Shown in pieces: positions 151-64,000 of a DNA stretch of 64,000 bases. Location of the stretch: contig OZ038378.1 in NCBI GenBank assembly GCA_964036045.1, forward strand, positions 54,498,001 through 54,562,000, written 5' to 3'. Below the pieces are notes generated by a model. That model did not search any database and was not told the DNA's origin. It worked only from the letters and a program-made list of their open reading frames with translations. Source of the stretch: Eutreptiella sp. 'Long Island Sound 2002'. Taxonomy: Eukaryota > Protista > Euglenida. Position numbers and translations under genes: made by a program. How positions within the stretch are numbered: position 1 is the stretch's first letter; the number at the start of each line of letters is the position of its first letter.

Positions 151-220
151 CCCTTCGTGAACGGCCGTTAAGTGGCCGTTTGAATAATTGCGTGAATTTC
201 ACGTGAATTTACCCAAATTT
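151..220 (+). repeat. Left TIR of element A
   Basis: Inverted match to 4255-4316: 12 bp perfect, then imperfect. Confidence 0.85.
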
Positions 221-407
221 TGAGGTTTTTGGGGGGAAATGCCATATTCTTGGTTCATTTCAAGGGCTTTGAGGGGCCAAAATTCCTCCCCTAGCTTTGT
301 TACGCATCATCCAATGAAAGTCCCGCCCCAAAAGCATGCATCATGACCGCACCGTGCCCAAAACGAGAGGTGCCGGAACCCGGCAAGCCTGTAGCCGATT
401 CGCAGCC

Positions 408-490
408 GTGAATTCACGCGAATTCGTACGAAATTCGCACGAATTTCGTACGAATTTCGTACGAATTTCACGTGAATTCACGTGATTTTA
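408..490. repeat. Element A palindromic array A1, downstream of the transposase
   Basis: Tandem 11-bp units GAAATTCGTAC/GAATTTCGTAC with flanking GTGAATTCAC motifs. Confidence 0.9.
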
Positions 491-598
491 CACAAATGTT
501 AACCGTGTGCACCCCCTGATTTGTACTCACACCCCTAGTAAGCCCCCCAGCATGCACCCTGGTCACGGGCAACAATGGTCTGGGTTCGTAAGGTCATC

Positions 599-2362
599 TC
601 ATGTCCGTCTCTTGCGGCACCAGAACCGCCGCTGTAGAGTCTGAAGGTGCTGCATGTCGGTTAGAAGCCGTCTTCTTGTGCGGCTTGCATACGTTTGTAC
701 ACTTATGGGCCCTTGCCCATGTTGAGCCCTTTTGGTCGCATCCCACCCATGCGACCAAAGGCTATCGTCAATGGTGTGGCTGTCCACAACCACTTGCACC
801 CCTAGTCTCCCCCGGAGGAGGCTTAGGCCCCCGCTGTTGCGCAACATGCGCTTCAGCCTCCGGTGACTTCCCTCCGTGGCAAAGCAGGAGAACTTTGACA
901 AGATTCTCCACTTCTTTGCAAAACAATACATGTGGTCGATCCAAAGATGCGTCCACAGAAGTTTGCCCCACTGGAGCTCATTGTGGGCAGCGCCCATGGC
1001 TATGCTACGGTTCCGGAGCCGCCCCAAGTCGGCCCTGGAGAACCATGCGGAACGCCACGCGTATACACACATGCTTGCAAAATTCTCCCACCACGTTTTG
1101 CACACCGACTCCCAACTTTTTCCCCCTACTTGATGCTGCCTGACACTAGGCTGCTCTGGGCAAGCATCTATTATCTTCTCCCAACCCCTATTGCGCATGA
1201 AATGGATGGCAGCAGCACACTCCATCCTCACCTTCCCCTTGCTGTTTGCCTTGTCATTGTTTAATGAGGCACGGGTGCAAGTTCGTGCAGCAAGCCGTGC
1301 CTCATCTAGAACCGGTTGCAGCATGGTGCGTGCCACAGTGGCCGGTGCCTTCCTTGTCAATTGTACAACTAGGTCCCGTGTCCCGTTGACTGCACACAAC
1401 AGGACACGAAGGACCCCATGGAGGCCATAATCAGGCACTCGCCTATCACTCGTAATGGTCCTATATATAGCATTTATGGCAACGGCTGGTTCCCAGTTGC
1501 CGTCTATCGCACTTGCTGTGCCGAAGGTAGCAAGGCACACAGCACGGTTACGCATGCAGACCCAACACACAGTGGCACCAGGGGATTTTGCCTTCCAGTT
1601 TTGGCAGCCCGCCATGAGCACCTGTGCCTTACGATCTGCACACACAAAAAAAAGGGACTGCCTATCGTTCCCTGCCGTATCCTTAAAACTTACGGTTGCG
1701 GCCTTGCGCAACTCATCATCAAAATCAATTTCCTCGGAGGCCGCGTAGATGGTCTCCCACTTTTCACTGCCCCCTAGTAGCCACCAACTAGATAGTTGGT
1801 TGGGATTGGCGGTGCCACCAAGCGTGAAATGGACGTACGAGGCCTCGTGCCTCGATGTACCGTCCACTGCAATAGGCAACCAATGCAGCCGTCGGTCCCC
1901 GGGCTGCATGATGGCCGAGGGTGGGGGTGGTCGACACTTGAATAGGTGGCCGATGCGGTCAGGTAGGTAGCAGGCCGCACCATTGATGGCCATGTCGTCA
2001 CCCGTATAGGCAGTGAACGCCCGGGACTCCGGCAACGCTAGCCGCCGAAGCATGCCGTACACCTGGTCCCATACCACACCGTACGTCATGCTCCCCACTG
2101 GGTACCGGGACTCTCTCCTAGAGAGGTGCAATGACCGGATCCTCCACACGGCCATAATCAACCTCTCCTCCTGGGCGGGCTCGGGCTGGACGGTGGCTAC
2201 AATTTTTGTTTCGGGGGTAAGCACTATTTGCCCCGTGTCGGGCAGGTACTTGACGGTGTAGGGTGCTGCAAGCTCCTTGGTAACAACCTCCTGGAGCTCT
2301 TGTAGGTGCCGCCGTCGTGTACGTTCCGCTACCAGATGGAATGGCTCCTTGGGCCGTGGCAT
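599..2362 (-). CDS. RAG1/Transib-like DDE transposase, intact 587-aa ORF
   Basis: Motifs occur in RAG1-core order: IAVDG (first D), CADRK...G...CWVC (second D plus CxxC), DYGLH, THLWIDH (HxxxxH), then E in ATEGSH exactly 20 residues after the second H, as in RAG1 H942-E962. No stops; lies between TIRs. Confidence 0.85.
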   Translation of the reverse strand: MPRPKEPFHLVAERTRRRHLQELQEVVTKELAAPYTVKYLPDTGQIVLTPETKIVATVQPEPAQEERLIMAVWRIRSLHLSRRESRYPVGSMTYGVVWDQVYGMLRRLALPESRAFTAYTGDDMAINGAACYLPDRIGHLFKCRPPPPSAIMQPGDRRLHWLPIAVDGTSRHEASYVHFTLGGTANPNQLSSWWLLGGSEKWETIYAASEEIDFDDELRKAATVSFKDTAGNDRQSLFFVCADRKAQVLMAGCQNWKAKSPGATVCWVCMRNRAVCLATFGTASAIDGNWEPAVAINAIYRTITSDRRVPDYGLHGVLRVLLCAVNGTRDLVVQLTRKAPATVARTMLQPVLDEARLAARTCTRASLNNDKANSKGKVRMECAAAIHFMRNRGWEKIIDACPEQPSVRQHQVGGKSWESVCKTWWENFASMCVYAWRSAWFSRADLGRLRNRSIAMGAAHNELQWGKLLWTHLWIDHMYCFAKKWRILSKFSCFATEGSHRRLKRMLRNSGGLSLLRGRLGVQVVVDSHTIDDSLWSHGWDATKRAQHGQGPISVQTYASRTRRRLLTDMQHLQTLQRRFWCRKRRT

Positions 2363-2469
2363 GGTGTGAGATACAGGACCTGTTGAACGGGCAGGCAGTC
2401 ATCGCAAAGTTTCTACCATCCCCCTCCCGCAGACAACTCTCTCTACTGTGATTCGCATGCAATGAAAAG

Positions 2470-2655
2470 AAATTCACATAGATTCGCACGAAATTCGTAC
2501 GAAATTCGTACGAATTTCGTACGAATTTCGTGCGAATTTCACGTGAATAGAAATGTGTGAATATTCTAAAAATGTGAAATTCGTACGAAATTCGTACGAA
2601 ATTCGTACGAATTTCGTACGAACTTCGTACGAATTTCGTGCGAATTTCACATGAC
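2470..2655. repeat. Element A doubled palindromic array A2, upstream of the transposase
   Basis: 2483-2536 is a perfect 54-bp palindrome of 11-bp units. A second, similar array follows at about 2577-2650. Confidence 0.9.
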
Positions 2656-2959
2656 TGTCACAGAATTTCTGCCAAAGCCTCATCCTTCTGCCCTCGTTGA
2701 CCCTCACAAAGCAAGCTCAGGATGGTGCTCATGGGCTATCACACACCCAGTCCAGTGGCTGTCATTCCGGCTGTCACTCAGCCAGCAATGTAACACGTCA
2801 GGGGGCATAGCATACCCCAAATAAAATACAAACAGTTCCGCAGAAAAAATCGCAAACAGGTCAGGGGGCACACCGTACCCCAATTAATGTACAAACAGTG
2901 CTGCAGAAAATTTCGCACAGTGGGGGGGGAGTACCCCACATATCGGTCAAACTGCCCAG

Positions 2960-3914
2960 CGCAGGATCCTTGGCCTGCTCCTCACTCCGCGCGGCGTTGA
3001 AAAGGAGCTCAAAATTCTTTGCGACGACTTTTTCGTCGCCGCTGCCCCACGCCTTCATCACCTTGTTCCACCCCACCTCACAATCCCGTGCCTCCACAAG
3101 CCCCCGAAGCACAATGTAGCCGTTCCCATCAACAAAGTTGAGGGGCGGCTGAGAGGGGCCAACCCTGTCGGGGGCGGGGTCAGGGCTGCCCGTCACCCCA
3201 TGAGGGGGGTCGGGAAGTGGTTCGGTGCGGAGGGGGGGTTCACTCGAAATGAAGGGGGGGGCGCATGTGGCACGACGGTACCATTGCAAAGATGTTGTGC
3301 TATAGAAGGTGGGGTGGGTGACGTCGGGGACGTGCACCTGGGGGGGGATGGTTGGATGGAAAGGGGCGACGCCCAAATCATCCCACCACCGGGGGTTGGC
3401 AAGATGCCAAGACAAGGGGAAAAAAGAGTGGTCTGCTGGTGCACCTACAGCAAGATCCTGCAGGCACACCATATCGCAGTGGGGGGGGGGGGGTGTGGAC
3501 GAGGTTAGTGGTGGGGTACACCTGGAGGTGGGCGTCCTTAGGCTTCCCCACAGGGTTATTCCTCATCGAGTTGAGGAGCTGGTCAACACTGGAGGGGAGA
3601 GGGGTTAGATGGAGAAATTTGAGGGTGGGGAGTTGGTGGCGCAGTTCCCTCCACAGGGTTGTGGCCCATCCCCTCCCCCCGAGGTAGCTGTTGCGGGTGG
3701 GGCTGCGCATGTCGATGTGGATGACATCGGGGGAGGGGTCGAGGGAGGCTGCCCAGCCCACGAGGTCATCCACCCCCAGTGCCTCTGACTCGTACGTTGC
3801 CTCCTCCAAATGATGGTGGGCAACGGGGAGGGCTTGGTAGTGGGCGAGGGTGTCGGCTGCGGGGTCGGGGCGCGAGGCCAGGCTTGCGAGTTGAGACATA
3901 GTCTGCTGCGACAT
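2960..3914 (-). pseudogene. Element A cargo gene: unknown N-terminal domain plus the start of a PhyH-like 2OG-Fe(II) dioxygenase; frameshifted and 3'-truncated
   Basis: ORFs 3378..4052 and 2861..3472 join near the poly-G run at about 3480. FVDGNGYIVLRGLVEARDCE resembles the PhyH N-terminal motif and aligns with element B LRGAVEAKECE...LLSNAHSREE..DP.L. The catalytic HxD...H half is absent. Confidence 0.65.
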
Positions 3915-3979
3915 TGTTAAAAGAGAAGAACGCGAGGGCTTTGAGAGCTGTAACAAAGCGAAAGAGTGGAAAGGAGGGT

Positions 3980-4130
3980 AAATTCGTACGAAATTCGTAC
4001 GAAATTCGTACGAATTTCGTACGAATTCGTACGAAATTCGTGCGAATTTCACATTCTCGTGAATCTGTGAATCTAGCGTGAATTTCTGCGTGTATTTAGG
4101 TGCGTGAATTTCACATTCACGCGAATCTCA
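3980..4130. repeat. Element A palindromic array A3, upstream of the cargo gene
   Basis: AAATTCGTACG x3, then AATTTCGTACG units, then GTGAAT motifs. Confidence 0.9.
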
Positions 4131-4254
4131 CCAAATGTGTTAAACCATGCGGGGACTTTAAACCTCTAAATTGCACCTATTTGTGGCATCTTACTTTGGG
4201 CGAAGGTAGCACGACAAAAGCACGCGATAGCACCAAGTTACGAGCAAAACACAG

Positions 4255-4316
4255 CAAAATTGGGTGAAATTCACGGTACCGTGAATCTCGGATTCAAACG
4301 GCCGGTTCACGAAGGG
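4255..4316 (-). repeat. Right TIR of element A
   Basis: Reverse complement of 151-220. Confidence 0.85.
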
Positions 4317-5899
4317 TACAAAAACTGCTCATAGGTCTCAAGATGGAGACTCAATGTGGAATGAAATATTGTTACCCTGCATTGCCCCCCAATGTCCTGT
4401 GGGTCGAGAAGAAAGGTTTCCTTCTTGCGCCCTCACCACTTCTTGGGTTGTTCTTGTTTTTGTTGTTATTGTTGTCGTCCCTGTTGTTGTTCGGGTCTTT
4501 ATTCAACTCAAGTGCTCAGTTTGGTGTAACCGCAATGCAATTTGATTCTTTCGGCCCCTTGTCACCGAAAGTTCCCACTTAAAACGGAGGTTTTGGGGTG
4601 GGCAAGCACGTTGTATTTTAATTCTCTGATTTTTTTCCTCGTAGAGGGAGGTCTTTTGTCCGGACCCAATTCTTGGAACATGCAGCTACAAAGATGGTTC
4701 ACGTGTACGGTCATTTTGTCCCCAATGCGTCCTAGATTGTTGCCTCTATGGCCCCGAATGAGGTCGATCCATGTTTGTAGGCTCTTGCTTATGACTTGAA
4801 CGCTCCACCTACTTTGCTTGTGAGTATGAGGCGATGTGAATGGTCTAGAACACGGCGTTGCGAGCGGTTGTACCGCTCTGGGCCAACGATGAAAGAATTC
4901 GAGGGACAAAATGTGGCCAAGGAGATGTGGATCCTCAAGGAGGACCTCATGTGGTTCACGGGGATCCGAGCAATGTAGAGGTCGATTGTACGAGCGTATC
5001 ACGTGTTGGCCCCGCAACACAATTGCACCCCAAAGCCCGCGTGGAGATACGCGCCAGCATGATGAACGCTTCGATACCCAAAAAGCTAGCAATAAAAACA
5101 CAACCACCTAGCGCACACAAACACATTGCATTCGTCTTTCACAAGTTCCGGTGAAACGCCCCACAAGAACGCCGTATATTCCTTTCTACTCTCCTATCGG
5201 ACCCGCTGTTCCAGACTACATCTTAAGCGGCGCAAGTTGCCCACCTAGGTGAATTGGCGAAGAATACCCAAAATTGGCCACTTTGGCTTGTGTGAAATGT
5301 CAAGGCATTTTTTAACGTCTTGTGAGGTGTACCTCATTATGACCACCTGTGAACATGTTTTCGCGCTGCACTGCCTGTCCATACAAAACCAGCTGCTTGG
5401 GTGGGTTCAGTTTTTAGGGTGCACAACACACGTTTCCCTTTGTGCTATGCATAATTCGTTTCCTTGTGCCTGTCGTTTGGAATTTCAAAAAGAGCTTGGA
5501 ACCAGACACTTTTTGAAAATGCACCCCTGTCAAACACATTGTGTTGACGGATTTATGTATGGTTCCAGACAAACTAAGCAATTTGCACCATTTCAAGTAA
5601 GGTTTCAACGGCTGTCCATCTCGAGTGTCGAACATCATCTTTCAGCCCCCTTGATATTGCAGAGGTGTCTTGTTCTACACACTTCAGTCTAAGTTCGCCA
5701 TTTCGAATACACATTCAACACACATGGATGGCGTCTACTTCCAGACTCTGTCCACCAATTTTCTGGTTGTTGCGCACTGATGTTACGTTACCGTTGAGTG
5801 TTTTGTTTAGTCTAACTCTGTTCGCCCGCTGATGAGCGAGGCACTGGGTACGGTAGCAGATCCCTTTGGTCTCCTGCGTGATTTCTTGCGAGGAGCTAA

Positions 5900-6134
5900 G
5901 TATGGTACACATATGGACTTGATGGATGCGGGATGACGAGCTTGGGGCAGCAATGCTTGTAGACGTCTGTGCACAAATGAGGGCCAACCGACGAACAAGA
6001 TGTGGTATAAGCACATTGGCTGCAGCGCATCGGCAATTCACCCTGGCCAAGGTGGTATGGAGTGTTTGCACACCACGTGTATACAATGTGGCAATTGTGC
6101 GGGAACATGGCTCTCCCAGAGGAGAAGGTTTTTA
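5900..6134 (+). pseudogene. 5' part of a decayed DUF6589/Academ-like transposase interrupted by element B
   Basis: The frame of ORF 5926 (...REHGSPRGEGFY) continues in frame into 13637 (IVGPRKAASRG...) once element B and one 2-bp duplication are removed. Confidence 0.45.
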
Positions 6135-6247
6135 CCTGCGGCTCACTTGGAAATGTGAAGTTGGGGCTCAGTTGGGGCTAAAACGGCTCATTTGGGGCTA
6201 CGTGCTGTTTTTCAAGGGGTTTAACCGGGGGAGTTTCTTTTTTTCGA

Positions 6248-6420
6248 CGGCTCAGTTGACTGAGCACCCCGACTGAGCCGTCACTGAGCCGTCACTAAGC
6301 CGGCTCACTTAGCTCTCACTTAGCTCTCACTGAGCGCTCACTGAGCGCGCCAAATGGCTCAGTGAGCGCTCAGTGAGCGCTCGCTGAGAGCTAATTGGGG
6401 GCTCACTCGGGGCTCACTTA
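6248..6420. repeat. Element B array B1
   Basis: CTCACTGAGCGCTCACTGAGC - short spacer - GCTCAGTGAGCGCTCAGTGAG stem-loop of 11-bp units. Confidence 0.9.
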
Positions 6421-6449
6421 ACATGCACGGGCACAATTCTTCCATCATA

Positions 6450-8010
6450 AGCACTTACTTGGTCCTTTGTCGCAATGCACGTTCAACAATCCTCCTCACC
6501 ATGTTCTCTCTCCCCTTCCTCTGGCACCGGGCACGTGACCAAGTCGTGCACTGTCATTGGAACCCCCTTTGCTGGTCACAGCCCTACTCTCCACCTCCCA
6601 ACCTTCCTTGCGGAGGTTATCATCTAGCGTGTGGTTATCCACCACACACTGCAAGCCCGACCTATCGTTCAGCAAGCTGACCCCCCCCCACTATTCCTAA
6701 GCAGCCGTTTCAGTCGCACATGGCTGCCCTCCAATGCAAAGCAACTAAACTTTGCAATGGTCCCCCACCGTGCAACATACGCATACATGTGGTCAACCCA
6801 CATGTGCGTCCACAAGTTCTTCTCCAATCCCAGGTCAAGGTGCCTTGCCCCCATGGTCAGTTGGCGTTGCAGCAAGGAACGTTGCTCTGCACCACTCAGA
6901 AAGTCGTCCTTCCAGGCCACCTCGGCCATGGCCGCAAATCCCACCACTCCGTGCACACATCAACCCGTGGGCTGCCCCCCACTTGATGGTTCCCGATCAC
7001 CGGTGCAACCAGCTGCAACAGTGGGCCCCACAGCCGGGCCTCGACAAAGTGCGAAGCAGCCCCCAACTCCATGCGCACTTGTCCTTTGGCATTTGCCTTG
7101 TCCGGCCCCACTTTCCAGGCCGCATTGTGCGGGCCACTTTCCGTGCCCCTTTTAGAACCCCTAGCACCATGGTGGCCGCACTCTTCCTAGATACTCCTCC
7201 ATGGGTCACGAGCACTCGCACAATTCCACTGACCCCCGCAATGGCAACACGCATGACTCCATGCGCACCGAAGTCAGGAACGCGGCGGTCCTCCGGGATG
7301 TCACGAAACACCCCGGTCAGACGTACATGGCCCTTAATTCCTTCCAGGGCAACCTCTTGTCCTCCGAACTTGGGCAATACCGTTTCACGGTTTGCGCCGC
7401 AGCAGTGGCACACCATGGCCCCGGGGCTCTTCTTCGTGAAGCCGTCCCCGCCGGCCAGCATGATGTGGGCCTTGCCATCGGCCCAGACGAAGAATAGGGG
7501 GCTGCGTGCCACCCCATCCGCATGCGGCAGTTGCAGGGCCGTAGCAGCGCGGAGCTGAGTATCGAAGTCACACTCCGATTGCACGCTGTGGACCGTGGCC
7601 CACATCTCGCTACCCTCAAACAGCTGGCAAGTTGTGTGGGCCCACAACCCGGTGCAGCCACTACACAGTGCACGTAGGCCCGATTCCAGCGGTTGGTGCC
7701 GTCAACGCCGATGGTCACCCTGGCGTTGCGCTGCACGCCCGGTTGCAAGGCTTCCGGTGTGCGTACGGCAGGCGCTTCATAGAGCAGGGCTAGCCGCTCA
7801 GCAATATTGCAAGACGCCCATTGCATTTCATACTCCCCCTCAAGGATACAAACCAGCTGGCTAGCAGGTTGGCTGAGATGCTTCACCCACGGGGCCACGT
7901 CGGCCCAGCTAACGGTGCTGTCCAGGTCAGGCAGCAGGTGGCATTTTGTGTAGCTCCTGTGGTATAGGTGTAGTGCCACATGCAGTCCCCGTGCTTGCGG
8001 CACAATTATC
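6450..8010 (-). pseudogene. RAG1/Transib-like transposase of element B, frameshifted
   Basis: Fragments are collinear with the A transposase: IGVDGTNR (ORF 7317..8003), FFVWADGKA...SPGAMVCHCC and PDFGAHGV (6997..7647), WTHMWVDH...KFSCFALEGSHVRLKRLLRNSGG (6669..6956), then VVDNHTLDD. Confidence 0.85.
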
Positions 8011-8480
8011 TCTGCTCATATCTCTTTGCTATCCCCCCCACCTGTTTCCCCTTGAATGTTGTCCCTTTCTAGCCTCCCCCCCCCTTGCCCCTACAGGATT
8101 CACACTCTTTGTCGGGGTGGGGTAGTGGGGTTGCACCAAGGTGTTTGTCCCATCCCCCCCCCCCTGGGGATGCCGCCAGGGTGTTTGTCCCGTCATACCC
8201 CCCCCGGGGATGCCGCCCGGGTGTTTGTTCCATCATACCCCCCCCCCCCCCCCGGCAGTGTCTCATCCTTCCCCGTCATAGCCACTCCCATTGCCACCTT
8301 TGATGCCCCCCTCCCCCCGGTTGATGCCGTAATATGGGCTGCACCCCCCCCCCCACCCCACAGCCATGGCACACACCCTATTTGCAGTCCCTGGTGGTAG
8401 GTGGCACATCCCCCCCACACCCTCTGCCCACAACCACCAGTTTGTGGCGGCAAACAATTGGAGGGCCCAGCCATCCGCCC

Positions 8481-8605
8481 GACTGAGAGCTCACTGAGCC
8501 GTTTGGCGCGCTCAGTGAGCGCTCAGTGAGCGCGCCAAATGGCGCAGTGAGCGCTCAGTGAGCTCAATGAGCGCCCAGTGAGCTCTCAGTTACCTCTCAG
8601 TCACT
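8481..8605. repeat. Element B array B2
   Basis: GCTCACTGAGC/GCTCAGTGAGC units around TTTGGCGC and GCGCCAAA spacers, upstream of the transposase. Confidence 0.9.
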
Positions 8606-8679
8606 GCACACCTAAAGACAGGCACTACACAGGCACCACACAAGAGGCCAATACGTGTTACAAAAAGACTGTTTGCTGT

Positions 8680-8930
8680 CTCAACATACCACAGGGGCCA
8701 GATCTGGCCCTTCTCCTGCAAGTGTTGTTGAACACAGGCCCATAACAGGGCTGAAAGTGGTGGCCCCTGGCCAGCTTGAAAAAAAGGCGCAACATACCAC
8801 AGGGGCCAGATTTGGCCCTGTTCTTGAACACAGGCTCCCAACAAGGGTGAAAGTGGTGGCCCCTGGCCTGCTTGAAAAAAGGCCGCACAACAGAGCTGAA
8901 TGTGGTGGCCCCTGGCCTGCTTGAAAAGTT
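8680..8930 (+). repeat. ~116-bp tandem duplication inside element B
   Basis: CATACCACAGGGGCCAGAT...GTGGTGGCCCCTGGCC.GCTTGAAAA occurs about 2.5 times. Confidence 0.7.
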
Positions 8931-9351
8931 TTCAGCTCCGTGAAACAGTTATTTTCAAATTAACATACAACTGCAATTGGTACACGGCCATAATTACGGC
9001 ACATTGACCTGTGAAAAAAAGGCACACAGCAGGGCCCAAGAAGTGCACAGCACGCTGCAATCTGTGGCCCTAGGCCCCCCAGAAGAAATTTCAACACCAT
9101 GAAGTGCTCAACAATAATATATACCATACATATATACGAACCACATAGCGGGGGTCCAGCGGCTACCACAGCGCCGCAGTTCCAGGGAGAAAACCCGGAC
9201 TGCCAACCACGGGATCTGGCTCCCAGCCAGGCTGCCGAGCAGCCGCCACCACATCCGACCGATACCAGCGCTCGGCGTTCTGCAGGCGGGATGCCACTTC
9301 CACCACAACCTTCGGCAGGCTGTGCACGCTCAGTTCCGGCATCGTGGTTGT

Positions 9352-10800
9352 TCAAGCGAGCCCCGCAATGGTCTGCAGCTGCTGGCACGACGACTTGGCG
9401 TCGGCCATCCGCCGCGTGGCCAAGTGGGTGTACGCCAACAGTCCCGATGCCAGGAATTGCATGGATTGCGCGCTGTAGGTTGCGGGGGGTGCAGCCGGAA
9501 CCCCTGACTGGGAGGGGGATGCAGCCCCCGGCCCAGATTCAGGGGGCTTGAAGCCCTTGGACCGCTGCAGCACCTCCGGGCGTGCCTCACTGCCAGCCCG
9601 TTGGCGCTCAGAGTCCACGAGCTGGACCTGCAGGTCGTCCCGCTGCCGCTTGACCGTGTCCAGCTCCTCCTTGAGACGGGAGGCTGCTTCCGCTGCCAGA
9701 CGGGCAGCATCCCGCTCCTGGCGGAACTGGTCACGGTCACGGCATGCCTCCCGGTACACGGTCATGGGCACGGTACCCGGTAACCCAGGCTCACGAAGGG
9801 GGCTCCCCAGAGCCGCCTTTTGTGGTGTGGCTGCATTTCCCTTGCCCACCAGCATTTTTGGGGGGGGGGTGCTGTCCTTGGCTGCCCGCTTTTTCGCTTT
9901 CCCGACACCACTGCGGGCACTCGGATCACTGCGGGCGCCTGCACTGCGGGCGCCTTCACTCTTCCCCCCCTCCGTCACCTCGCCATCACTGACCACCTTT
10001 GGGTCGATGACGCCCCCCCCCCCCCCCCCCAGAGCGCTGCCACGGGAGCTGGCGACGTGGCCACGCATGGCGTGCCAAGCCTCCGAGAAAAACCCCTCCC
10101 CCTGCACTTCCCATGACGCCACGTGCTTAAAAGCAATTGAGCCAGCGCGGGCCAGCAACCCCCCCTCCTCCGTCCCCACGGCTAGGTCCAAGCACCAGTG
10201 TTTGGACCCCAGCCGGTAAGCAAAGCGGGCTACAAAAAAACCCCCCTTCCCTGCCAAAAGCCCACAATCCTCGGTGACGGTCACCCTGCACGGCAGGTGC
10301 ATTTGGGTGGGCGTGGTTGTCTGCGGGGCGGTGCACGCGTGGAGGGTGACGCTCCAATACCACCTCTCGGTGGAGTGCCGCGGTACCCCCTTCACGTTAA
10401 CCGTCCTATTGAGGAGGTACGCCGGTGCGGGCTGCTTGTTGAACGGGGCAATTTAGAGCCCGAAGTAGCCCACGCGTACATCACTGGCCCGGGCTGCCTG
10501 CACCTGGGGGAAGGGGACCGGGGACCCGATGGCCAGGTCGGTGAGTGATGGGCCCACCGGCCCCCGACCCTTGTCAACCGCCGCTGCCCTCTCGTCCCCG
10601 GCTCTCACCATCGCGGGCTCTGCTTCCGATGCCCCCGGCACCGGCTCCTTCGTCACTAACGCCAGTTGCTGTTGCCCTCCAAGCGGTGGTCGTGATGAAC
10701 TGCAGGCACCTTTGCCGGGCGGCGCGAACGTTACCGGACGTTGACTCCGTGTTTTGCTGCCGTGTGCATCAACCAAAGGCTCGTGCAGGGGGAATTGAGC
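9352..10800 (-). pseudogene. Element B middle gene: beta-rich domain, K/G-rich linker, coiled coil; one in-frame stop
   Basis: ORFs 10453..10875 and 9352..10395 share a frame and are separated by one TAA. A coiled coil (RDRDQFRQERDAARLAAEAASRLKEELDTVKRQRDDLQVQL) lies near the C-terminus. The gene is bounded by arrays B3 and B2. Function not recognised. Confidence 0.55.
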
Positions 10801-10900
10801 CTGCAAATGTGGGGGGGGGGGGGGGGGACTCCAAAAGTACCAGTTTCGATAAAGATGCAAACGGCAGCAAAGCACTGCAGCGGCCTGGTCCCGGGTTCCA

Positions 10901-10990
10901 CCTCACTGAGAGCTCACTGAGCCGTCAGCGAGAGCTAATTGGGCTCACTCAGCGCTCACTGAGCGCCAAACGGCTCAGTCATCTCTCAGC
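10901..10990. repeat. Element B array B3
   Basis: CTCACTGAG/GCTCAGT units with a GCGCCAAACGG spacer. Confidence 0.88.
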
Positions 10991-11349
10991 TGCACCTCCA
11001 GACCGGCAACTACAATTGGTGGCAGAATGCTGAAGCCGCCTCAGCCCAGCCCCATGCAGGCCATACACAGGGCCCATACAGGCCCCCATACAGGCCCGGT
11101 AAAGGCCAGCGTCAAACTAGCACGGCCTGTGCAGGAGGCCCACGCGCTGGCCGCCTTGTGCACATGTTAAGCCAACTCGTGGGGGACCTTGTGCACATGT
11201 TAAGCCCGCAAGTGGGGCATTACACGCATAACACACAAAGAACCCCGTGCCAGCCCACAGCCCCACAGGCCCGCAGCCCCGAACCCAGCTTTCCAAACAC
11301 CCTGGTGCACCCCACCACCACCCAGTCTCGCCCCCTACCAATATTCCCC

Positions 11350-13202
11350 CTGACACCCCGGTGTGAATCCTGCAGGGGAGGGGGAGAAGGGAGTAAGACC
11401 GTGCCGCTGCAGATGGAGCGCATCAAAAGCAGGACCTCGGCGCCCGCATCGCTCCTTGTACAGCGCTTCTCCGGCCCGCGATGCGAGGAGAAGTCAAGCA
11501 GCAAAGCCTGTTGTGCAGAGATGGGGCAGAAGGATGGGGCCCAATATTGCTGCAGCATGGCGGCCTCCCTGAATCCACTGTTACCCAGGTTGAGCCATGA
11601 TGGCCCGCTTGTCTTAGGACGTCGCCTTACTGCACGTACACGTGGCACATGGGGTCGGCGGCGCCCAAGGCAGGCCTGGCCAGCAGCAGCGGGTGGCATG
11701 GGCAGCCGGGGCCTGACGGACCCATAGGGGCCAGCCAGTCGTCCAGCTGCTCAAACTGCGGCAGACCGACCGCGCCCTGCAGCCCCTCGCCAAAGGCGAA
11801 GTACTGCCCCTAGTGGCCGAGAGCCCTGGGGTTGGGCAGCGGCCCGTCGCCCCGTGGCCGTGAAGCCAGCTCATCCTTGGCCCATTGCAGAGGGTCAACG
11901 ATGAACCGTTCCACGTCCACCCACTTGTGACGCTCGTCGGGGGTGAGGAAGCGGAAGAGAACAAACTGCTTCCCCACCCCCGGCAGCGCGGCGATAACCC
12001 GATGTCTCAGCGTGGAGGCAAAGAGAACCATGTCCCCAGGCTGAAACTCGAAGGTCTCGACCCGCAGAGCGTCATGGTCTCCCAGGTGGCTGCCCAAGTG
12101 CACCTCCAAATGATGCTTGTCCGAGAGGACAAGCATCATTGAGAGATGCCCGGGCAGGTCACCCATGCTAGGGAGCGTACCTGGCAACTGACCAACGTCA
12201 GTATGCCAGGTCTGCTCCCTAGCATCTTCCCCGGCGGCAATTGCCGACCACTGCGTTGGGAAGATACCCCTCATCTCGGGCCACCGAGCACTGCACTGCT
12301 GACTAGCCCGTTGCAAGGGGTCCCTTCCCAACACAGAGATAAGCTTGCCGGGCCGCGTACCCTAGCGCCGTGGCAGTTTGGGATCAGCCAAGCACTCCTC
12401 GCGAGAGTGTGCATTGGACAGCAGATCCCAAATTGCATCCGGCTGGGTACCGCAGGAGTCGACGAGAATGCGGTACCAGTTCTCGCACTCCTTGGCCTCT
12501 ACCGCCCCCCTCAACGCCCAACTCATCCGACTCAAGGTCATAAGCCGGGAGTTCATGTGAGAACACCGGGGCAGCCAAGGAGATATAGGGGGGAGAGGAG
12601 GCGGCACCGCGGAGTAACACGGACTTCTTGGTCCTGTACAGGGCTGGGGTGGTGTAGTCGGGCACCACATGGCATCACTCGGGAATGATGGGACAAGCCG
12701 AAAGGCTTTCCCACCATTCCCCTGATACCACCCCAACCCCGAAAGGCAGGGCCTCAAGGAGTCCCTTCTTGGGTGCAACGTGGCTGACACCAAGATCTGC
12801 AGTCCAACCGTGCTGCAGGTCTTTGGTGTCATGAACCCGTGTCCCGAACTCCTGGGGGGTACCGATCAGCTTTTCTAAGGACTGCTGCAACAAATCTTGG
12901 ACAACAGCCACAGGAAAGCGGAAGCGTACGGCACGAAGAGCTGGATGCACCTGGCGCCACATTTGGTTGCACCGGTGCATCCAGGTCTTTCCAAGAAGGG
13001 TCACATCGGACACGGTGGTGTGGACCACTTATGGGGAACAGGCAGGGAGCTGCTGGGCCCACGGCTTCAAAGGCTCTAGGTCCGTCGAAGGCACCCCCGG
13101 GTACCCTGCCTCTGTGAAAGTGGTAGGTACCCGGGGGCGACTAAGCAAAGACGTGAGAGCTTTTGAAGCCGCTCATTCCAGGATTAGGGCGACATTAGAC
13201 AT
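11350..13202 (-). pseudogene. Element B cargo gene: unknown N-terminal domain, PhyH-like 2OG-Fe(II) dioxygenase, Cys-containing tail
   Basis: ORF 11810..12334 has QTWHTD (HxD) and FQPGDMVLFASTLRH (distal His). Upstream frames align with the A cargo gene (PWAQQL..VVH vs GWAASL..VIH; WWESL..P..HVVPDYTTP.LY vs WWDDL..P..HVPDVTHP.FY). Several stops and frameshifts. Confidence 0.75.
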
Positions 13203-13295
13203 GGTGTGAAAGAGAGGACCTATGGGAGCGGGAAGGAATGGATGGGTAGGCGGATAGGGGGGCGGAGGAGAGGCGGAAAGTTGGGGGGAACCCTC

Positions 13296-13446
13296 TGAGT
13301 GAGCCCCCAAGTAGCTCTCACTGAGCGCTCACTGGGCGCTCACTGAGCCATTTGGCGCGCTCAGTGAGCGCTCAGTGAGCGGTCAGTGAGCCGGCTCAGT
13401 GACGGCTCAGTGACGGCTCACTCAGGCGCTCAATCAACTGAGCCGT
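13296..13446. repeat. Element B array B4
   Basis: Near mirror image of B1, upstream of the cargo gene. Confidence 0.9.
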
Positions 13447-13636
13447 CACCAAAAAAAGTACCCCCCCCCCTGGACCTTGACCAAGTGAGTATCTAAAACT
13501 TCCAAAAACATTGAATGCACATTACCTAGCATGCAAAAAGCACAACAAACAAGCACAAAGACATCGCAATGCACAACTGAGCCCCAAATGAGCCCCAACT
13601 TCACATTTCCACTTAACCACCAGTGAGCCGCAGGCA

Positions 13637-15100
13637 CATTGTTGGTCCCCGGAAAGCAGCATCACGGGGGATGAGAAGGTTGTTGTCATATGCGGGTCTT
13701 GCTACGGACCGGTTACCGCCTTTGGCGCAACAGGCCCATGCTAGGACAAAGACTGTTTGGAGATCAATGGAACGGAAGCAGGAGGTGGTGGTGTATGACA
13801 ACTGGTATCGAAAAGGGTACTACAGTGATCCTATTCACCGTGATTGCTATTTGAATGTCACTGCCATGTCAGCACTCCATACCACTGAGGTTGCCATGTA
13901 CCTAGTATTCCACACACTTGATGATTTTCTCCAACGCATCGCGGAGGTAGCATAGGTAATAGCATCCACTTATCGGGAGGTCCCACGAGCAATGGAACCT
14001 TTGAGGCGAGATACACCGGAGGCATAATACATACACCCCACATTAGCCCCCCCCCCCCCCCCCGAGATGTGCACTAGGACAACATTCGTTTACTGGAGCG
14101 GTACCCGCTTACACTGGTTGATTTGGTGTAGAGCACATATGAGGACGTGTGTCACATCATGGAACAGCGCCTGGCCATGCAAGTTCACACCCACCACGAA
14201 ATGCCCGTCCTGTTGGATGAAAATATAGTTTACACATTCGCCAGCGCCTGTACTCTCGGACATACAACCCATTCAAGTTAGCCGAGCACTGTACAACCGA
14301 ACCAATGCTGTACGGTTGTTGGGACCCGTGTAAGAAGGTGTGGACGATGATGCACCGCACAAATTCTTTGCCATACTGGGGTACCTTGGACAACAAATTC
14401 GGAAAGTCGATGAGGAGACCATGTTGCACCCAAGCGTACTACACATTGGGGAGCAATTTTGTGCCCTAGTGCTAAAAAAACACCAAATGTTGTGCACCGT
14501 ATTGCACACAAGGAGGCATCAATTATGGCTTTCCCGGAGGTAGCCCGCAAAGTACCCCTAGCCCGGTTGACTAGATTGAAGGACCTTCTGAACTTCTACA
14601 TTCCGGCTGCGTTCCTCCTGGGTAACCAAGTCCGTAACGGCAACTGGGGCGGTTGCCCCGCTGGTACCGGCCGTATAGCACGTCAAGTTTTGGAGTTGAG
14701 CTTGGTATTGATTGTGGCATTGACCATGGCCACCGATTGCAACGTGCCCAACCTATGAACACTGTGTGTTGCCTCTGAATGTTGGCTACCCTTGAATGAG
14801 GGCATCCCGGGTTGTTCTTACTCCGAGGAGGTACTCGAGGCAATGTTGAGTTGTCTTGGATCCAGGCGCCGGGCATACCCACAGATCAAGACCTTGCACC
14901 ACACCTTGCACCTAATCTTGAGCATGAGACCACCAAAGTGGGGAGGGAGGAAGACACTAGGGCAGATTCGCAGTGGGTTGGTCGCAATTGTGTCCGCATG
15001 CTTGCGTAGATTCTTGTTGGCAGTGACGTCAAACCGCATGGTGCATGTCGAGTGGAATAGTGGAAAGAATGCCGCGTTCAACCCCGTTGCGGAGGACATA
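13637..15100 (+). pseudogene. 3' part of a decayed DUF6589/Academ-like DDE transposase
   Basis: Fragments in order: VVVYDNWY (candidate first D), PVLLDENI (second D), YGCW.P.KKVW (CxxH-like region), LKDLLNFYIP..LL...VRNGNW, and EEVLEAMLS. Many stops and frameshifts; the family call is by motif recall only. Confidence 0.45.
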
Positions 15101-18100: not shown

Positions 18101-19740
18101 CCATTGTCAATCCTAAACTCAAGATTGCGCCTGTCGTGAGCTGCCTGACTATGAACGTCGGTTCGGATGCCCCCCAGAGGGGGTGGCTGATAGTGAGAAG
18201 CTCGAGGGGGTCATGCATGTAACAGGGATGGTGCATGGTACCCTCTTGCACTCCACTGTTACCAACATGCCATACTCCTGCATCATTGTCGAGCTGCCAA
18301 GGGGAGTTATGGAAGGCAGTGATGTTATGCAGAGCCGAAATTTCGTGTCTGAAACGCTTGTTCCTCTCCTTGGTGATGCCAGCGATGTCACGGGTGTGTT
18401 GGATGTTCTCGGAAGACTGCATGACAACGAGCATTTGACTACAACCCGTATTGGCTGCTTCATTTAGGGGTCGTTGACGCAACAGCGCTCAATGGGTTTC
18501 AGCGAGCTGTGGGTGATGTCAAAAATCCGTTGCCTAAGAAGGCATTCCTGCCAGTCGATGCCATTTGCTGCCAAAGTTTCCATCGGTGCATTCTAAAGTC
18601 AAATTGTTTACCTGGCTCTAGACACCCGAGACCAAAAACCCATTGGTGTGCCCATTATATCTACAGAGTTGTTTGGAACCAGACTGCAAGTGCCTAGAAA
18701 TAGATACCTCGGTTGCTGTTGAGCTGTGACTAGTGGTCGAAAACTCAATATTCCCTTGTGCAGGTGCCCCGATACTTTACTTTCTTTCGTGGCCCAATGG
18801 TTCAACAGATATGTACGGAGGTTGCGGATTCCATGATGCACCACTTGGCAGATGAAGTACCCATGGAAGCAAGCACCTTGTGCTTATTGGTTATTGATAG
18901 TTCTGTGAACGTGGCTCGCAGTCTGGCAATGCGAAGGCCTATGGCTATCAGTGTCGTCCTAGGTTTGCCAACTATGCAAGAGCCAGTGGCAAGCGTTGGG
19001 GGTCAAGTGTGTAGCAGTTTGCGGATCGCTGAAGGAGTGAACCCCATTTCGTGGTCTGGATTCTTGGAGAATTTTGGGAATGGATATCTTGTGGAACGTA
19101 GCCGTGTGCCTGAGAAGGCAGACGCGCAGCACGAGTCCGATGAGGAGCTGGAAACGGTGGGGTCCGTTTCCAAGGACACTATGGCAGGTGGCCACTGTAA
19201 TTTTGTGGCACCTTTGTTGTCCTTTTTGCTTCAATCAGGGCATGACTTTGGCAATGGTGCACATCATAGTCACAAATTTGGAACAACAGCTGGGACGCGT
19301 GCAGGTTCATAATGTCAGGGCCCTACTTGGTGCTGCTCTGTTGCACCTTGGGGTCAACGAGGGTGATGTACTTAGACGGAGCAAGCTTCCCCCCCCCAAA
19401 AAACAAATTGTACCCCCGTAAAAAATGCCACCAAGAAGTGGTCCTGAAAACATTGTGTGAAAGTAGTGGAATTGTAATGTCGTCAAGCGCGCGGACATTT
19501 CGGGTAATTGCTGTCATACGTGAAATATGTTGGCTCCTTGGAGGCAATACAACTTTGATGTTCACCGCTATAGAACATGACAAAAATAGTCTAATTTTGA
19601 GGCGCCACCCCCCAAAACAAATGCATGCGTGTTACCCTTGGCATAGCAAACGACGAACATTGTCATTGCACGTCCATTTGCAACTTGTGTTTTGAAATTG
19701 GTTCAGAGGACAGAGAATTATGGAGATTTGTTTGGAAACG

Positions 19741-19743
19741 CAT

Positions 19744-19774
<31 letters not shown>

Positions 19775-19780
19775 TATATA
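19741..19780. repeat. (CA)n/(TA)n microsatellite at the 5' junction of the LHC retrocopy
   Basis: Seen directly in the sequence. Confidence 0.9.
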
Positions 19781-19794
19781 AAGTAATGAGTTGG

Positions 19795-21975
19795 CCTGAT
19801 GTGCTGAATGGCCGCTGGGCTATGTTGGGTACACTCTGGTGCCTATTCCGAGAGGTGCTGCAAAAGTACACTGCTATCGACAATGGTGCCAGCAAAGGTG
19901 TGTGGTTTAGGGCTGGTGCCATGATCTTTGGGTCTGATGGCTTGAACTACACGGGTACCCCCGTGTTGGTGCGCGCCCAATCCATCCTTGCCGTGTTGGC
20001 CTGCCAAGTTGTCCAGATGGGTGCCATCGAGGCATACCGTGTGAACGGTGGTCCATTCGGTGGACGTGACCTTGATCTGGTGTACCCTAGTGGCAAGCGA
20101 TTTGACCCTTTGGGTTTGGCCGGCGACCCTGATGTGGCTGCCGAGTTGAAGGTGAAGAAGATCAGGAGCGGCCGTTTGGAGATGCTCTCCACGTTCGGCT
20201 ACTTCGTGCAGGCTGCTGTCTCCGGCCAGGGCCCTGTTGGGAAATGGGCCTCCCACATTGCTGATCCGTTTGCGGTGAACAGGGTGACCCTTGAGATTGC
20301 CGCCGCGTACGTGCCATCTGTTGCCATGTTGGCAGCTGCTAGGAAGAAGAAGGCCGCCGCCCCTAAGGTGGACTTGTCTAGCTGGTATGGCCCTGACTGC
20401 AAGCGGTGGTTGGGCCTTAACACTGCGGGCAGCTGCGTCACTTACTATTTGACCGGTGAGTACCTTGGTGTCTACGGTTGGAACAGCGCTGGGCTTGTAG
20501 CAGACCCCAAGACCGTCGAGTGCCTCCGCGAGGCTGAGGTGGTGCACGATCGCTGGCCTATGTTGGGTACTCTCTGGAGCCTGGCCCCCGAGCTGCTGCA
20601 GAAGTACACTGCCATCGACAATGGTGCCAGCAAAGTTGTGTGGTTCGAGGCTGATGCGATGATCTTCGAGTCTTATGGCTTGAACTACATGGGTGCCCCC
20701 GTGTTGGTGCGCGTGCATTCCATCCTTGCGGTGCTGGCCTGCCAAGTTGTGCTGATGGGTGCCATGGAGGCTTATCGTGTGAATGGTGGTCCATTCGGTG
20801 AACGTGACCTTGATCTTGTGTGCCCTGGTGGCAAGGGATTTGACGCTCCGGGTTTGGTCGGCGACCTTGATATGGCTGCCGAGCTGAAGGGGAAGGAGAT
20901 CAGGAGCAGCCGTTTGGTGATGCTCCCCATGTTCGGCTGCTACGTGCAAGGTGCCGACACCAGCCAGGGCCCTAGTGAGAACTGGGCGTCCCACATTGCA
21001 GATCCTTTTGCGGTGAACGGGATGACTCTTGAGATTGCCACCCAGTACACGCCATCCGTTGCCATATTCGCAGCTGCTGGGAAGAACAAGGCTGCCGCCC
21101 CCAAGGTGGATCTGTTTGGCTGGTATGGCCCTGATTGCAAGAAGTGGTGGGGTCCTGACCTTGCAAGCAGCTACGCCCCTTACTACTTGACCGGTGAGTA
21201 CCCTGATGACTACGGGTGGGACAACGCTGGGCTTGCAGCACACCCCAAAACCTTCAAGCGCCTCAGCGTGGCTGAGGTGCTGCACGATCGCTAGGCTATG
21301 TTGGGTACTCTCTAGTGCCTCAATGGTGCCAGCAAAGGTGTGTGGTTCAAGGCCGGTGCCATGATCTTCGGGTCTGGTGTCTTGAACTACACGGGTGCCC
21401 CCGTGTTGGTGCGCGCCCAGTCCATCCTTGCCGTGTTGGCCTGCCAAGTTGTGCAGATGGGTGCCATCGAGGCTTACTGTGTAAACAGTGGTCCATTCGG
21501 TGGACGTGTCCTTGATCTGGTGCACCCTGGTGGCAAGTGTTTTGACTCTTTGGGTTTGGCCGGCGACCTTGATGTGGCTGCCGAGTTGAAGGTGAAGGAG
21601 ATGGGGAACGGCCATTTGGCGATGCTCTCCATGTTCGGCTACTTCGTGTAGGCTGTTGTCACCGGCCAGGGCCCTGTTGGGAACGCGGCCTCCCACATTG
21701 TTGATCCATTTGGGATGAACAGGTTGACCCTTGAGATTGCCGCCCAGTACACGCCGTCTGTTGCCATGATCGCAGCCGCTGGGAAGAAGAAGGAGGCCGC
21801 CCCCAAAGTGGGTTTGTCTGGCTGGTATGGCCCTGACCGCAAGAAGCGGTTGGGCCCCAACACAGCGGACAACTACGTCCTTGACTACTTGAACGCTGAA
21901 TACCCTGGTGACTACGGGTGGGACAACGCTGGGCCTGCGGCAGGCCCCAAGGCCTTCGAGCCAGCACGTGGGTAG
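19795..21975 (+). pseudogene. Lhcb: Intronless, truncated LHCII (chlorophyll a/b-binding) polyprotein pseudogene, about three units plus part of a fourth
   Basis: Repeated WYGPD.K.WLGP, YLTGEYP.DYGW, EV.H.RW.MLG, FDPLGL and ELKVKE...RL.M motifs. Units start at about 20347, 21085 and 21787 (738-bp period; unit 3 has a 36-bp deletion) and are joined by PSVAM(L/I)AAA(G) linkers. TAG stops at 21292, 21313 and 21649. Confidence 0.92.
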
Positions 21976-21987
21976 CATCACCATCTT

Positions 21988-24123
<2,136 letters not shown>

Positions 24124-55579: not shown

Positions 55580-56790
55580 CCCCCCTACTGGTGGTCACAG
55601 CCTGATGCCTCGGTGCCTGGCCCCTGCGTACGAATGGAGACCACCGGCACGGTGAGACATCCCCAAAGGCCGCTGACTGGCGGTCCCGTAATTGGGCAAT
55701 GGCCTCCCCAAATGGCCGCTCCTCCCGGGCAACAACCACGGGCATTGCGAGACATCCCGTCTCCCTCTAGCTGGTGATCCCGCAATCGGGCATGCCATGG
55801 CCTTCCCCAGTGGCCGCTCCTCCCGGGCAGTCATCACCAGCATGGCAAGACAACCCATCTCCCCATGGTTGGTGATGATTTCAGCAGACATACAATGGCC
55901 TTCCGTAATGCCCGCTCCGCTCGGGGACCGACGACAGGCATGGTGAGACAACTCGTCCCCCCCTTGCCGGCAATCTCGCAACCCAACGAACGATGGACTT
56001 CACCGTTGCCCATTCCTCCCCGGCACTGACCTACGGCACGGCAAAACTTCCCGGATCCCCCTAGCCCGCGACAACACAACTGGAAAGATGATGGCCTTCC
56101 TTGTTGGCCGGTCCTCCCGGGAAGGGCCCCACAATGGCACGGCCAGACCACCGGTACCGCCGTGGCCGATAATCTCGAAACTGGGCGAATAATGGCCTTC
56201 CCTCTTGGCCGCTCCTACCGGGCAGTGAGTACCGACATGGCAAGACCTTCCGTCTCCCGCTGTGTAGTGACCCTGCAACTAGGCAAATAATGGGCATCCC
56301 CGTCGGTTGATTCTTTCGGGCGACCACCGGCATGGCAAGACATCCAGTCTCCAACTGACCGCTGATCCAGCAAGCGGGCAAATCTTGGCCATCCCCTTTG
56401 GCCGATCGCCCCTGCCAACCACGTGACTCATCCCGCAACAAGACAAGTGATGGCCTTCCCTAGTGCTCTGCTCGCGGCCAGCGACCACCGGCATGGCGAG
56501 ACATCGCGTCTCCCCCAGGCGAGTGATCCCACAACGGGGCGCATGACGGCCCTCCCCGGTCACCGCTCCATCTATGTAGGGACCACCATCACAACGAGAC
56601 GTCCCGTCTCCCCCCGGCCGGTGCTCCTAAAACCGGGTAGACGGTGGCGTTCTCTTTTGCCTGGTCGCCCGAGCATGAACCTCTGGCACGGCAACGCGTC
56701 CCGTCTCCTTGTGGCCGGCGATCCCACAACGAGACAGAGCATGGGCTTCGCCAAAGGCGATTCCTCCCCGGCAACAACCACTGGACTAGA
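55580..56790 (+). repeat. ~97-bp tandem repeat x~12
   Basis: CACCGGCATGGC.AGACATCCCGTCTCC...GATCCCGCAA...GATGGCCTTCCC recurs about every 94-100 bp. Confidence 0.85.
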
Positions 56791-59494: not shown

Positions 59495-59539
59495 GTAGAC
59501 TAGAGATTATATACATATACATGTACATATATACATACA

Positions 59540-59571
<32 letters not shown>

Positions 59572-59576
59572 CATAT

Positions 59577-59622
<46 letters not shown>

Positions 59623-59625
59623 ATG
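59495..59625. repeat. Compound (TACA)n/(CA)n/(TA)n microsatellite
   Basis: Seen directly in the sequence. Confidence 0.95.
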
Positions 59626-59887
59626 GGTTTGGGGGCTATTTTGGGCGAAAATGGCTGTTTTTGGCCCAAAACAGCGCAGATTTGGGAGGGCACCTTCCGA
59701 CTTGGCGCCACCGCCCCGGGCCGCCACTGGTGAGTTTTTGGCTCAAAACTTGGATTTGGCAAGGACACCACCTAGGCTCCAAGATGGCTACATGGGCAAA
59801 TGATGCGAAGCGTTGGGACGGAGCAATGGCCAAAACGCCAAGGAGGCGTGTTGTTGTTGCTTGTTGCTTGTTGCTTGTTGTTAGCTA

Positions 59888-60057
<170 letters not shown>

Positions 60058-63987: not shown

Positions 63988-64000
63988 CTCCTCGTCCCGC

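Follow-up and report, generated by a model that had tools for sequence, protein, structure and literature searches.

The CMCT clade of transposases comprises EnSpm/CACTA, Mirage, Chapaev, Transib, Plavaka, ESTA, Lanisha and RAG1, and is defined by C(2)C and H(3-4)H motifs, with duplications of 2-5 bp (Kojima 2025, PMC12730594). RAG1 and Transib are its only members with solved structures, and ESTA elements show TA duplications and a transposase recognized as RAG1-like by HHpred (PMC12730594). In fungi, ESTA, EnSpm, Plavaka and other lineages carry TET/JBP dioxygenases, which have been proposed to counter methylation-based silencing (PMC12730594). Here we describe two transposons, designated A and B, lying in a 64,000-nucleotide stretch of the genome of the euglenid Eutreptiella sp. 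'Long Island Sound 2002' (assembly GCA_964036045.1, contig OZ038378.1, positions 54,498,001 to 54,562,000 of the forward strand; hereafter, the window). A and B probably represent two anciently diverged lineages of a single autonomous cut-and-paste DNA transposon family, which combines a DDE transposase of the RAG1/Transib fold, a dioxygenase-like open reading frame (ORF1), a further gene (ORF2) and arrays of short palindromic units, and which can be placed in the CMCT clade by its traits.

Element A holds an intact transposase gene whose product did not match any Pfam family at E≤10, and sequence searches of PDB, either with the single sequence or with a 19-sequence profile, did not retrieve RAG1 or Transib. 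An exhaustive representative search with the transposase yielded 505 related clusters, and an alignment of the relatives (A1) was used as input for AlphaFold2 (AF2), resulting in a model with pLDDT 83.2 and pTM 0.76. When the model was compared with PDB by Foldseek, all 48 significant matches were with the RAG1 core, amphioxus BbRAGL or Helicoverpa Transib (HzTransib), the best being RAG1 6dbw_C (E=1.5e-9, TM ≈0.5 over ≈600 columns) and the next fold in the list being Hermes (E=0.02). The RAG1 fold is thus seen only by structure prediction, since nothing was found in Pfam or PDB at the sequence level. Putative catalytic residues are D167, D243 and E497; between the last two lie the zinc-type motifs C266-x2-C269 and H472-x4-H477, conserved in alignment A5, the latter with a spacing equal to that of RAG1. 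All these residues occupy invariant or near-invariant columns of alignments A1 and A5. The RAG1-core-like transposase proposed by a first-pass annotation, made by a model from the sequence alone, was thereby borne out for both fold and motifs. The A transposase belongs to a cluster of 203 members at ≥90% identity, mostly 587 aa in length, and the family is abundant in this genome, with hundreds of copies, many of them retaining an intact transposase.

Further copies of A were fetched from the same assembly (ENA ERZ25074135) by means of their proteins. Four of these, of 6044 bp (L005), 7002 bp (L006), 9215 bp (L013, with a nested insertion) and 6982 bp (L014), all display the order terminal inverted repeat (TIR)-array-ORF1-array-ORF2-array-transposase-array-TIR, and in L014 all three ORFs are intact, coding for proteins of 677 aa (ORF1, at L014 3117-5150), 507 aa (ORF2) and 587 aa (transposase). 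No gene of the family needs an intron. The full-length element measures 6-7.5 kb and carries three co-oriented intron-less genes, namely ORF1, ORF2 and the 587-aa transposase. Compared with L005 and L006 by blastn, the A copy of the window shows an internal deletion of 2.0-2.9 kb, the segment gone corresponding to L005 8236-10265, so that ORF2 is missing altogether and ORF1 has lost its catalytic half. What is left of its ORF1, which was also compared with the homologs P0237, P0379 and P0314, still includes the N-terminal region and reaches into the beginning of the dioxygenase-like domain; it contains one frameshift and no longer has the HxD...H core. A 63-bp tandem duplication is found exactly at the deletion junction, so that the ORF predicted at 2861-3472 ends in sequence that lies downstream of ORF2 in full-length copies. 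By alignment, then, the A copy of the window is an internal-deletion derivative of a family with full-length copies of ≈6-7 kb. The coordinates and the one-strand gene order proposed for A and B by the first-pass annotation were correct, but the internal deletion of A had been overlooked, and the extra gene seen only in B is carried by full-length A copies as well. Among five A copies sampled via the transposase alone, ORF1 is intact in three, truncated in the window and absent in L001, which is truncated at the 5' end. A 4.7-kb A copy (L012 5010-9723) has intact ORF1 and transposase and has lost ORF2 entirely, from which ORF2 may be dispensable in cis.

Element B lies head to tail with A, both on the minus strand, and shows the layout TIR-array-ORF1-array-ORF2-array-transposase-array-TIR, with ORF1 and transposase both broken by several frameshifts and stops. 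A third lineage, B' (L002), has gene order and four arrays as in B, with transposase 55% and ORF1 60-62% identical to the B counterparts. The three-gene, four-array layout is conserved in lineages A, B and B'. DNA-level alignment of A and B is limited to two short segments (32-47 nt), and the transposases, ≈40% identical overall, are alignable only as protein, as the first-pass annotation had stated; pieces of the B transposase, distributed across several frames, are 40-52% identical to A (tblastn, E=5e-75). The ORF1 product of L014 aligns with B over aa 268-558 (31% identity, E=2e-22) and aa 9-222 (28%, E=1.7e-8), and the ORF at 2861-3472(-) of the window aligns with B 12749-12546 and 12517-12374 (34%, E=4.9e-9). 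The expected homology of the two cargo genes is therefore significant and nearly full length, including both the N-terminal region and the dioxygenase-like region. ORF2 products of A and B are 34% identical over 88 aa (E=2e-10). Judged by these alignments, all three proteins are homologous between lineages. Since identities fall in parallel for the three proteins (transposase 40%, ORF1 31% and ORF2 30-34% between A and B; see above for B and B'), their divergence would fit a long co-inheritance and not a recent capture.

Table 1. Coordinates of the features of elements A and B in the window.
Feature	Position	Strand	Remarks
Element A	151-4316	(-)	4166 bp, internally deleted; TIR search and blastn vs L005 and L006
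A TIR, transposase side	151-210	.	Partner 4257-4316; sequence reading and terminus matches
A array 4	400-499	.	ATTCGTACGAA-type units, subterminal, downstream of transposase
A transposase	599-2362	(-)	Intact 587-aa ORF; RAG1-core-like fold by AF2 and Foldseek
A internal array	2460-2678	.	Doubled set of 11-nt units; equivalent of array 3 in full-length copies, where it lies upstream of transposase
63-bp tandem duplication	2792-2917	.	Exactly at the element A deletion junction
A ORF1 remnant	2957-3914	(-)	aa 1-318 of 677-aa protein; tblastn with L014 ORF1
A array 1	3960-4059	.	Upstream of ORF1
A TIR, ORF1 side	4257-4316	.	Partner 151-210
Element B	6135-13634	(-)	7.5 kb, decayed full-length copy, sister lineage of A
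B TIR	6135-6200	.	Partner 13575-13634
B array 4	6259-6421	.	GCTCAGTGAGC-type 11-nt units
B transposase pseudogene	6565-8003	(-)	Frameshifted, several frames; tblastn vs A
B array 3	8476-8604	.	Upstream of transposase
B ORF2	9352-10437	(-)	347-aa ORF; homologous to ORF2 of full-length A copies
B array 2	10897-10989	.	Between ORF1 and ORF2
B ORF1 pseudogene	11223-13157	(-)	Several frameshifts/stops, e.g. near 12335-12364 and 12677
B array 1	13295-13432	.	Upstream of ORF1
B TIR, ORF1 side	13575-13634	.	Partner 6135-6200

In the ORF1 product (≈680 aa), N- and C-terminal regions flank a domain that has an HxD...H signature and resembles Fe(II)/2-oxoglutarate (Fe/2OG) dioxygenases. In L014 the signature residues are H375 and D377, with a distal H444/H445, whose counterparts in B are HTD and RH. 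In B the dioxygenase-like domain extends over ≈11660-12514, and the HTD...H triad reported for it by the first-pass annotation was found there: HTD occupies 12205-12197, and the distal His is encoded at 12004-12002. When A-type and B-type ORF1 are aligned, the columns of HxD and of the distal His are some of the best conserved. Six of 17 members matched Pfam 2OG-FeII_Oxy_3 at E≤1, the best (E=4.9e-4) scoring 21.4 bits where the cut-off is 27, and B ORF1 itself with E=0.012; further sub-threshold matches were with 2OG-FeII_Oxy_5 (Pfam) and a PiuC-like model (NCBIfam, E=0.04). All Pfam and NCBIfam matches of ORF1 are thus with Fe/2OG dioxygenase models. In the homolog P0196, residues 35-107 match profile positions 12-81 of 98, a range whose length would allow it to include both HxD and distal His. 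The label PhyH-type, given previously to this gene, was not supported, as PhyH was not matched at E≤1 by any of more than 25 ORF1 sequences; likewise, no Tet_JBP match at E≤1 was obtained with ORF1 sequences. On these grounds ORF1 is probably an Fe/2OG dioxygenase of unassigned subfamily.

All full-length copies that we examined have ORF1 between their TIRs. For the dioxygenase-like region, dN/dS (the ratio of nonsynonymous to synonymous substitution rates) between B and B' was 0.27-0.29 over 199-257 codons. As a protein-guided alignment could bias this estimate, a plain blastn alignment was also used, in which the ORF1 mismatch rate was 0.23 at first, 0.20 at second and 0.40 at third codon positions (Fisher p=6e-7). 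ORF1 is under purifying selection. Neither cargo loss nor neutral evolution, the outcomes against which the first-pass annotation had proposed to check its reading, was therefore observed for full-length copies and for the B/B' pair (dN/dS ≈0.28). A scan of prokaryotic genomes did not retrieve relatives of ORF1.

The ORF2 product, ≈350-500 aa in length across the family, combines a small conserved domain with a coiled-coil-like region; in B a basic stretch is present as well, and Pfam gave only weak coiled-coil matches. No Kelch or PHD match was found in Pfam for either ORF1 or ORF2.

Both elements hold arrays of 11-nt palindromic units, with unit ATTCGTACGAA in A and GCTCAGTGAGC in B, at the positions correctly given by the first-pass annotation; the four arrays of B' are built on a unit of their own, GCTTTCACTGA. 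One array lies upstream of each of the three genes and a fourth is found downstream of the transposase, so that the first and the last arrays are subterminal. In B, arrays 4 and 1 form a 94-nt inverted repeat, 93% complementary. A unit-like half-site is also present in the TIR tips (TTCGTGAA in A, GCTCAC in B). Because the units change with the lineage and the half-sites recur in the TIR tips, a protein encoded by the element is predicted to bind the 11-bp units. Such binding would serve the recognition of the ends and perhaps the autoregulation of the three genes, in analogy with TnpA on the subterminal repeats of En/Spm.

The ends of A correspond to CCCTTCGTGAAC (two matches in the window by terminus search, against 0.16 expected) and those of B to CCTGCGGCTCAC (terminus search). 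They start with CCCTTCG and CCTGCGG, respectively, neither being a CAC heptamer, and only the first two bases are common to the two TIRs, in accordance with the unrelated TIRs described previously. The A copy of the window is flanked by TA (149-150 and 4317-4318), and TA occurs just outside both termini in all six A copies read at both ends (that of the window, L005, L006, L012, L013 and L014); in L001, of which only the right end was read, TA is found there, and element B is flanked by TA on the left and CA on the right. No 5-bp direct repeat surrounds the insertions in the six A copies, the flanks being TA and not a 5-bp duplication. Read from the flanks alone, a TA target-site duplication is inferred, within an insertion context that forms a loose palindrome, (T)ATG|TA|CAT(A). 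A 4-bp duplication of GTAC was also considered and is disfavoured, since the young copy L014 reads ...caaTA on the left. Elements A and B of the window share near-identical flanks of 8-10 bp, GTTTTT(G)TA / (T/C)ACATTGTTG, with no wider homology. Location of both elements inside copies of one repeat was rejected, as the likeness stops ≈10 bp from the insertion; its confinement to this short distance points instead to a target preference. In both L005 and L006, the two flanks form inverted complements across 7 bp. On these data the transposase would cut at the CC... termini and insert at TA.

Among described systems, the closest likeness is with ESTA of rust fungi (PMC12730594), which shares with our family a TA duplication, a transposase recognizable as RAG1-like only by profile or structure, and an extra gene of the Fe/2OG dioxygenase type inside the TIRs. 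The novelty suggested by the first-pass annotation, which knew of no RAG1-like element with a PhyH-type partner, is hence overstated, a RAG1-like transposase with a dioxygenase having been published in ESTA with TET/JBP (PMC12730594), although ORF1, if a dioxygenase, is of a different family. Indeed, the ESTA host is a fungus and ours a euglenid; the ESTA cargo is TET/JBP, whereas ORF1 has no TET/JBP match and weak 2OG-FeII_Oxy_3 matches; and in ESTA-1_PCor the TET/JBP gene was newly acquired from a Harbinger-type element, whereas here the cargo co-diverges with the transposase. Compared by description only, the third conserved gene, the four arrays of 11-bp palindromes and the CC..GG termini also distinguish our elements from ESTA. 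With En/Spm (CACTA) of plants they have in common short subterminal repeat arrays in both orientations, more than one element protein and a CMCT-type transposase; unlike En/Spm, they have no CACTA termini, 3-bp duplications or Pfam match with plant CACTA transposases, their arrays are found also between genes, and their genes are intron-less and separate rather than alternatively spliced. The fungal transposons carrying TET/JBP genes (Kyakuja, Dileera, Zisupton, Plavaka, hAT, Harbinger, IS3EU and Helitron) likewise join a mobile element to a dioxygenase, with a proposed escape from silencing, but differ in the dioxygenase family (if ORF1 is one), transposase lineage and host kingdom. Our literature searches did not retrieve any paper linking Transib-like elements with Euglena.

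Some observations weigh against reading A and B as lineages of one CMCT family with a dioxygenase partner. The kinship to ESTA/Mirage rests on traits and not on sequence comparison; the TA duplication is deduced from flanks only; the termini are CC..GG, while most CMCT elements have CA..TG. Among A copies dN/dS ranges from 0.3 to 0.9 and is uninformative, since post-insertion decay dominates. Metagenomic contigs with transposase relatives are only ≈2 kb long, and the association of ORF1 with the transposase is known from this genome only. As for ORF1 itself, no Pfam or NCBIfam match reaches the curated threshold and A-type ORF1 has none at all; profiles built on ORF1 alignments A3 and A4 retrieved nothing relevant from PDB; the AF2 model of ORF1 (P0314, 17-row alignment A3) had a pLDDT of 36.8 and was unusable, and the many AlkB, ALKBH1 and P4H entries that Foldseek listed for it, all at E≥0.29, were not used as evidence. 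In A-type ORF1 no 2OG-binding residue can be confidently assigned.

The results on ORF1 just listed, i.e., the lack of a family match at threshold, the failed structure prediction and the empty PDB profile searches, speak in favor of ORF1 being a non-enzymatic accessory protein, with a DNA-binding or regulatory function, that reads the 11-bp arrays as do, by comparison, TnpA of En/Spm and the Myb-like ORF1 of Harbinger, the HxD...H signature being fortuitous or vestigial. Moreover, some element protein must account for the lineage-specific arrays, and large N- and C-terminal regions of ORF1 are also conserved between A and B. Nevertheless, HxD and the distal His are near-invariant in lineages that are otherwise only ≈31% identical, the weak matches obtained from two independent libraries are all with Fe/2OG dioxygenases, and the match range of P0196 could include both motifs; we thus regard this alternative as unlikely. 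We rather favor ORF1 as a dioxygenase, which would be active and would aid the element; its most plausible action would be to oxidise DNA bases or chromatin proteins and so to blunt host silencing, as suggested by analogy with the TET/JBP genes of fungal transposons. In E. gracilis, one study reported cytosine methylation to be higher in endogenous viral regions than in the DNA next to them (PMC12455990), which makes an anti-silencing role conceivable and is no test of it.

Less probable still is that the elements are true members of the Transib/RAG family, with ORF2 or ORF1 functionally replacing RAG2. Transib, ProtoRAG/RAGL and vertebrate RAG1 do share with our transposase the catalytic core fold, the DDE triad and the CxxC and H-x4-H motifs; RAG1, BbRAGL and HzTransib were the only significant structural matches, and the accessory genes adjoin the transposase. 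The structural match is, however, non-discriminating, since RAG1 and Transib provide the sole solved CMCT structures (PMC12730594), and Foldseek accordingly places the family in the clade, not within Transib. Transib/RAG elements have 5-bp duplications and TIRs of the CAC heptamer/nonamer type, whereas here we observed TA on both sides in six copies, CC termini and subterminal arrays. Sequence-level similarity to RAG1/Transib was not detected in Pfam or PDB even with a profile, and ORF2 has no Kelch or PHD signal in Pfam that would make it a RAG2-like partner. TA flanks and non-CAC termini being contrary to Transib/RAG proper, the family fits in the CMCT clade by traits, nearest to the TA-duplicating ESTA/Mirage, the 2-5 bp duplication of the clade agreeing with the TA deduced from the flanks.

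That the transposon carries ORF1 as a passenger, after capture of a host gene from which it draws no benefit, as in Pack-type capture, is very improbable: DNA transposons do commonly capture genes, TET/JBP genes were passed passively among fungal transposon lineages (PMC12730594), and the A copy of the window and L001 moved or survived with no complete ORF1, but the gene occupies the same place inside the TIRs of A, B and B', diverges in parallel with the transposase under purifying selection, is intact in most of the copies sampled via the transposase, and was retained while no intergenic DNA similarity was left between A and B, so that its retention is not inertia.

Going beyond the single family of two anciently diverged lineages, we tentatively consider a wider interpretation, which as a whole is rather doubtful. 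These elements might represent an undescribed RAG1-fold (CMCT) lineage of superfamily rank, occurring in euglenids and other aquatic protists, whose obligate partners, already in place before A and B separated, would be an active Fe/2OG dioxygenase of non-TET type and a coiled-coil protein, and whose genes would be controlled by the protein-bound 11-bp arrays. The dioxygenase might then act on DNA or chromatin of the element to escape silencing; one possibility is oxidation of thymine or methylcytosine, in a host that produces base J and methylates DNA of foreign origin.

The present findings extend RAG1-related (CMCT) transposases to a euglenid host. With hundreds of young copies, at least one of them with the three genes intact, the family offers a tractable natural system for studying how an enzyme of the RAG1 fold handles array-type ends and insertion at TA. 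Outside fungi, it would also add a second, independent example of a dioxygenase-like gene maintained in a DNA transposon, the gene being apparently inherited with the transposase over a deep divergence under selection and not newly captured. Such co-inheritance strengthens the idea that mobile elements bring their own chromatin- or DNA-modifying enzymes against silencing. In addition, lineage-specific arrays of 11-bp palindromes placed gene by gene constitute an unusual regulatory or recognition layout, which is directly testable.

Outside this genome, relatives of the transposase at 29-44% identity were found in aquatic metagenomes, on contigs of ≈2 kb; diverged relatives P0044, P0050, P0055 and P0096 are on metagenomic contigs of the same size, and a metagenome scan for relatives with their context returned one contig of 2.2 kb. 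Several metagenomic contigs (L003, L004, L009 and L010) are bordered by short-period palindromic arrays of their own, such as 11-bp GCGCGC-type units at ≈50-130 of L004 and, at the 3' end of L009, units containing GGTACC; these contigs probably break at such arrays.

Near other copies of the family, diverged relatives of the transposase are present (L001 12245-13192 and 1122-76, with 35% and 21% identity), together with a piggyBac-type DDE_Tnp_1_7 gene and a reverse-transcriptase gene (L001 10136-11776; L005 1718-3652), showing that this genome is densely packed with mobile elements. Within element B, tandem repeats of 40 bp (8127-8246) and 49 bp (8728-8927) were observed, as well as homopolymer runs of 16-19 C at 8231-8254 and 10006-10029, a further run lying just outside B (14041-14064). 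No RNA family was found in the window by Rfam. At 56000-64000 of the window GC content is 0.62-0.67, with long overlapping ORFs on both strands, among which a 593-aa ORF (62206-63987, minus strand) has no Pfam match. An intron-less ORF of 524 aa at 19720-21294 (plus strand) codes for three chlorophyll a/b-binding domains, i.e., a light-harvesting complex (LHC) polyprotein, whose best PDB match is a 620-aa LHCI chain of 9vfj, which agrees with a euglenid-type host having LHC polyproteins; an antisense ORF of 715 aa at 19843-21990 is probably spurious.

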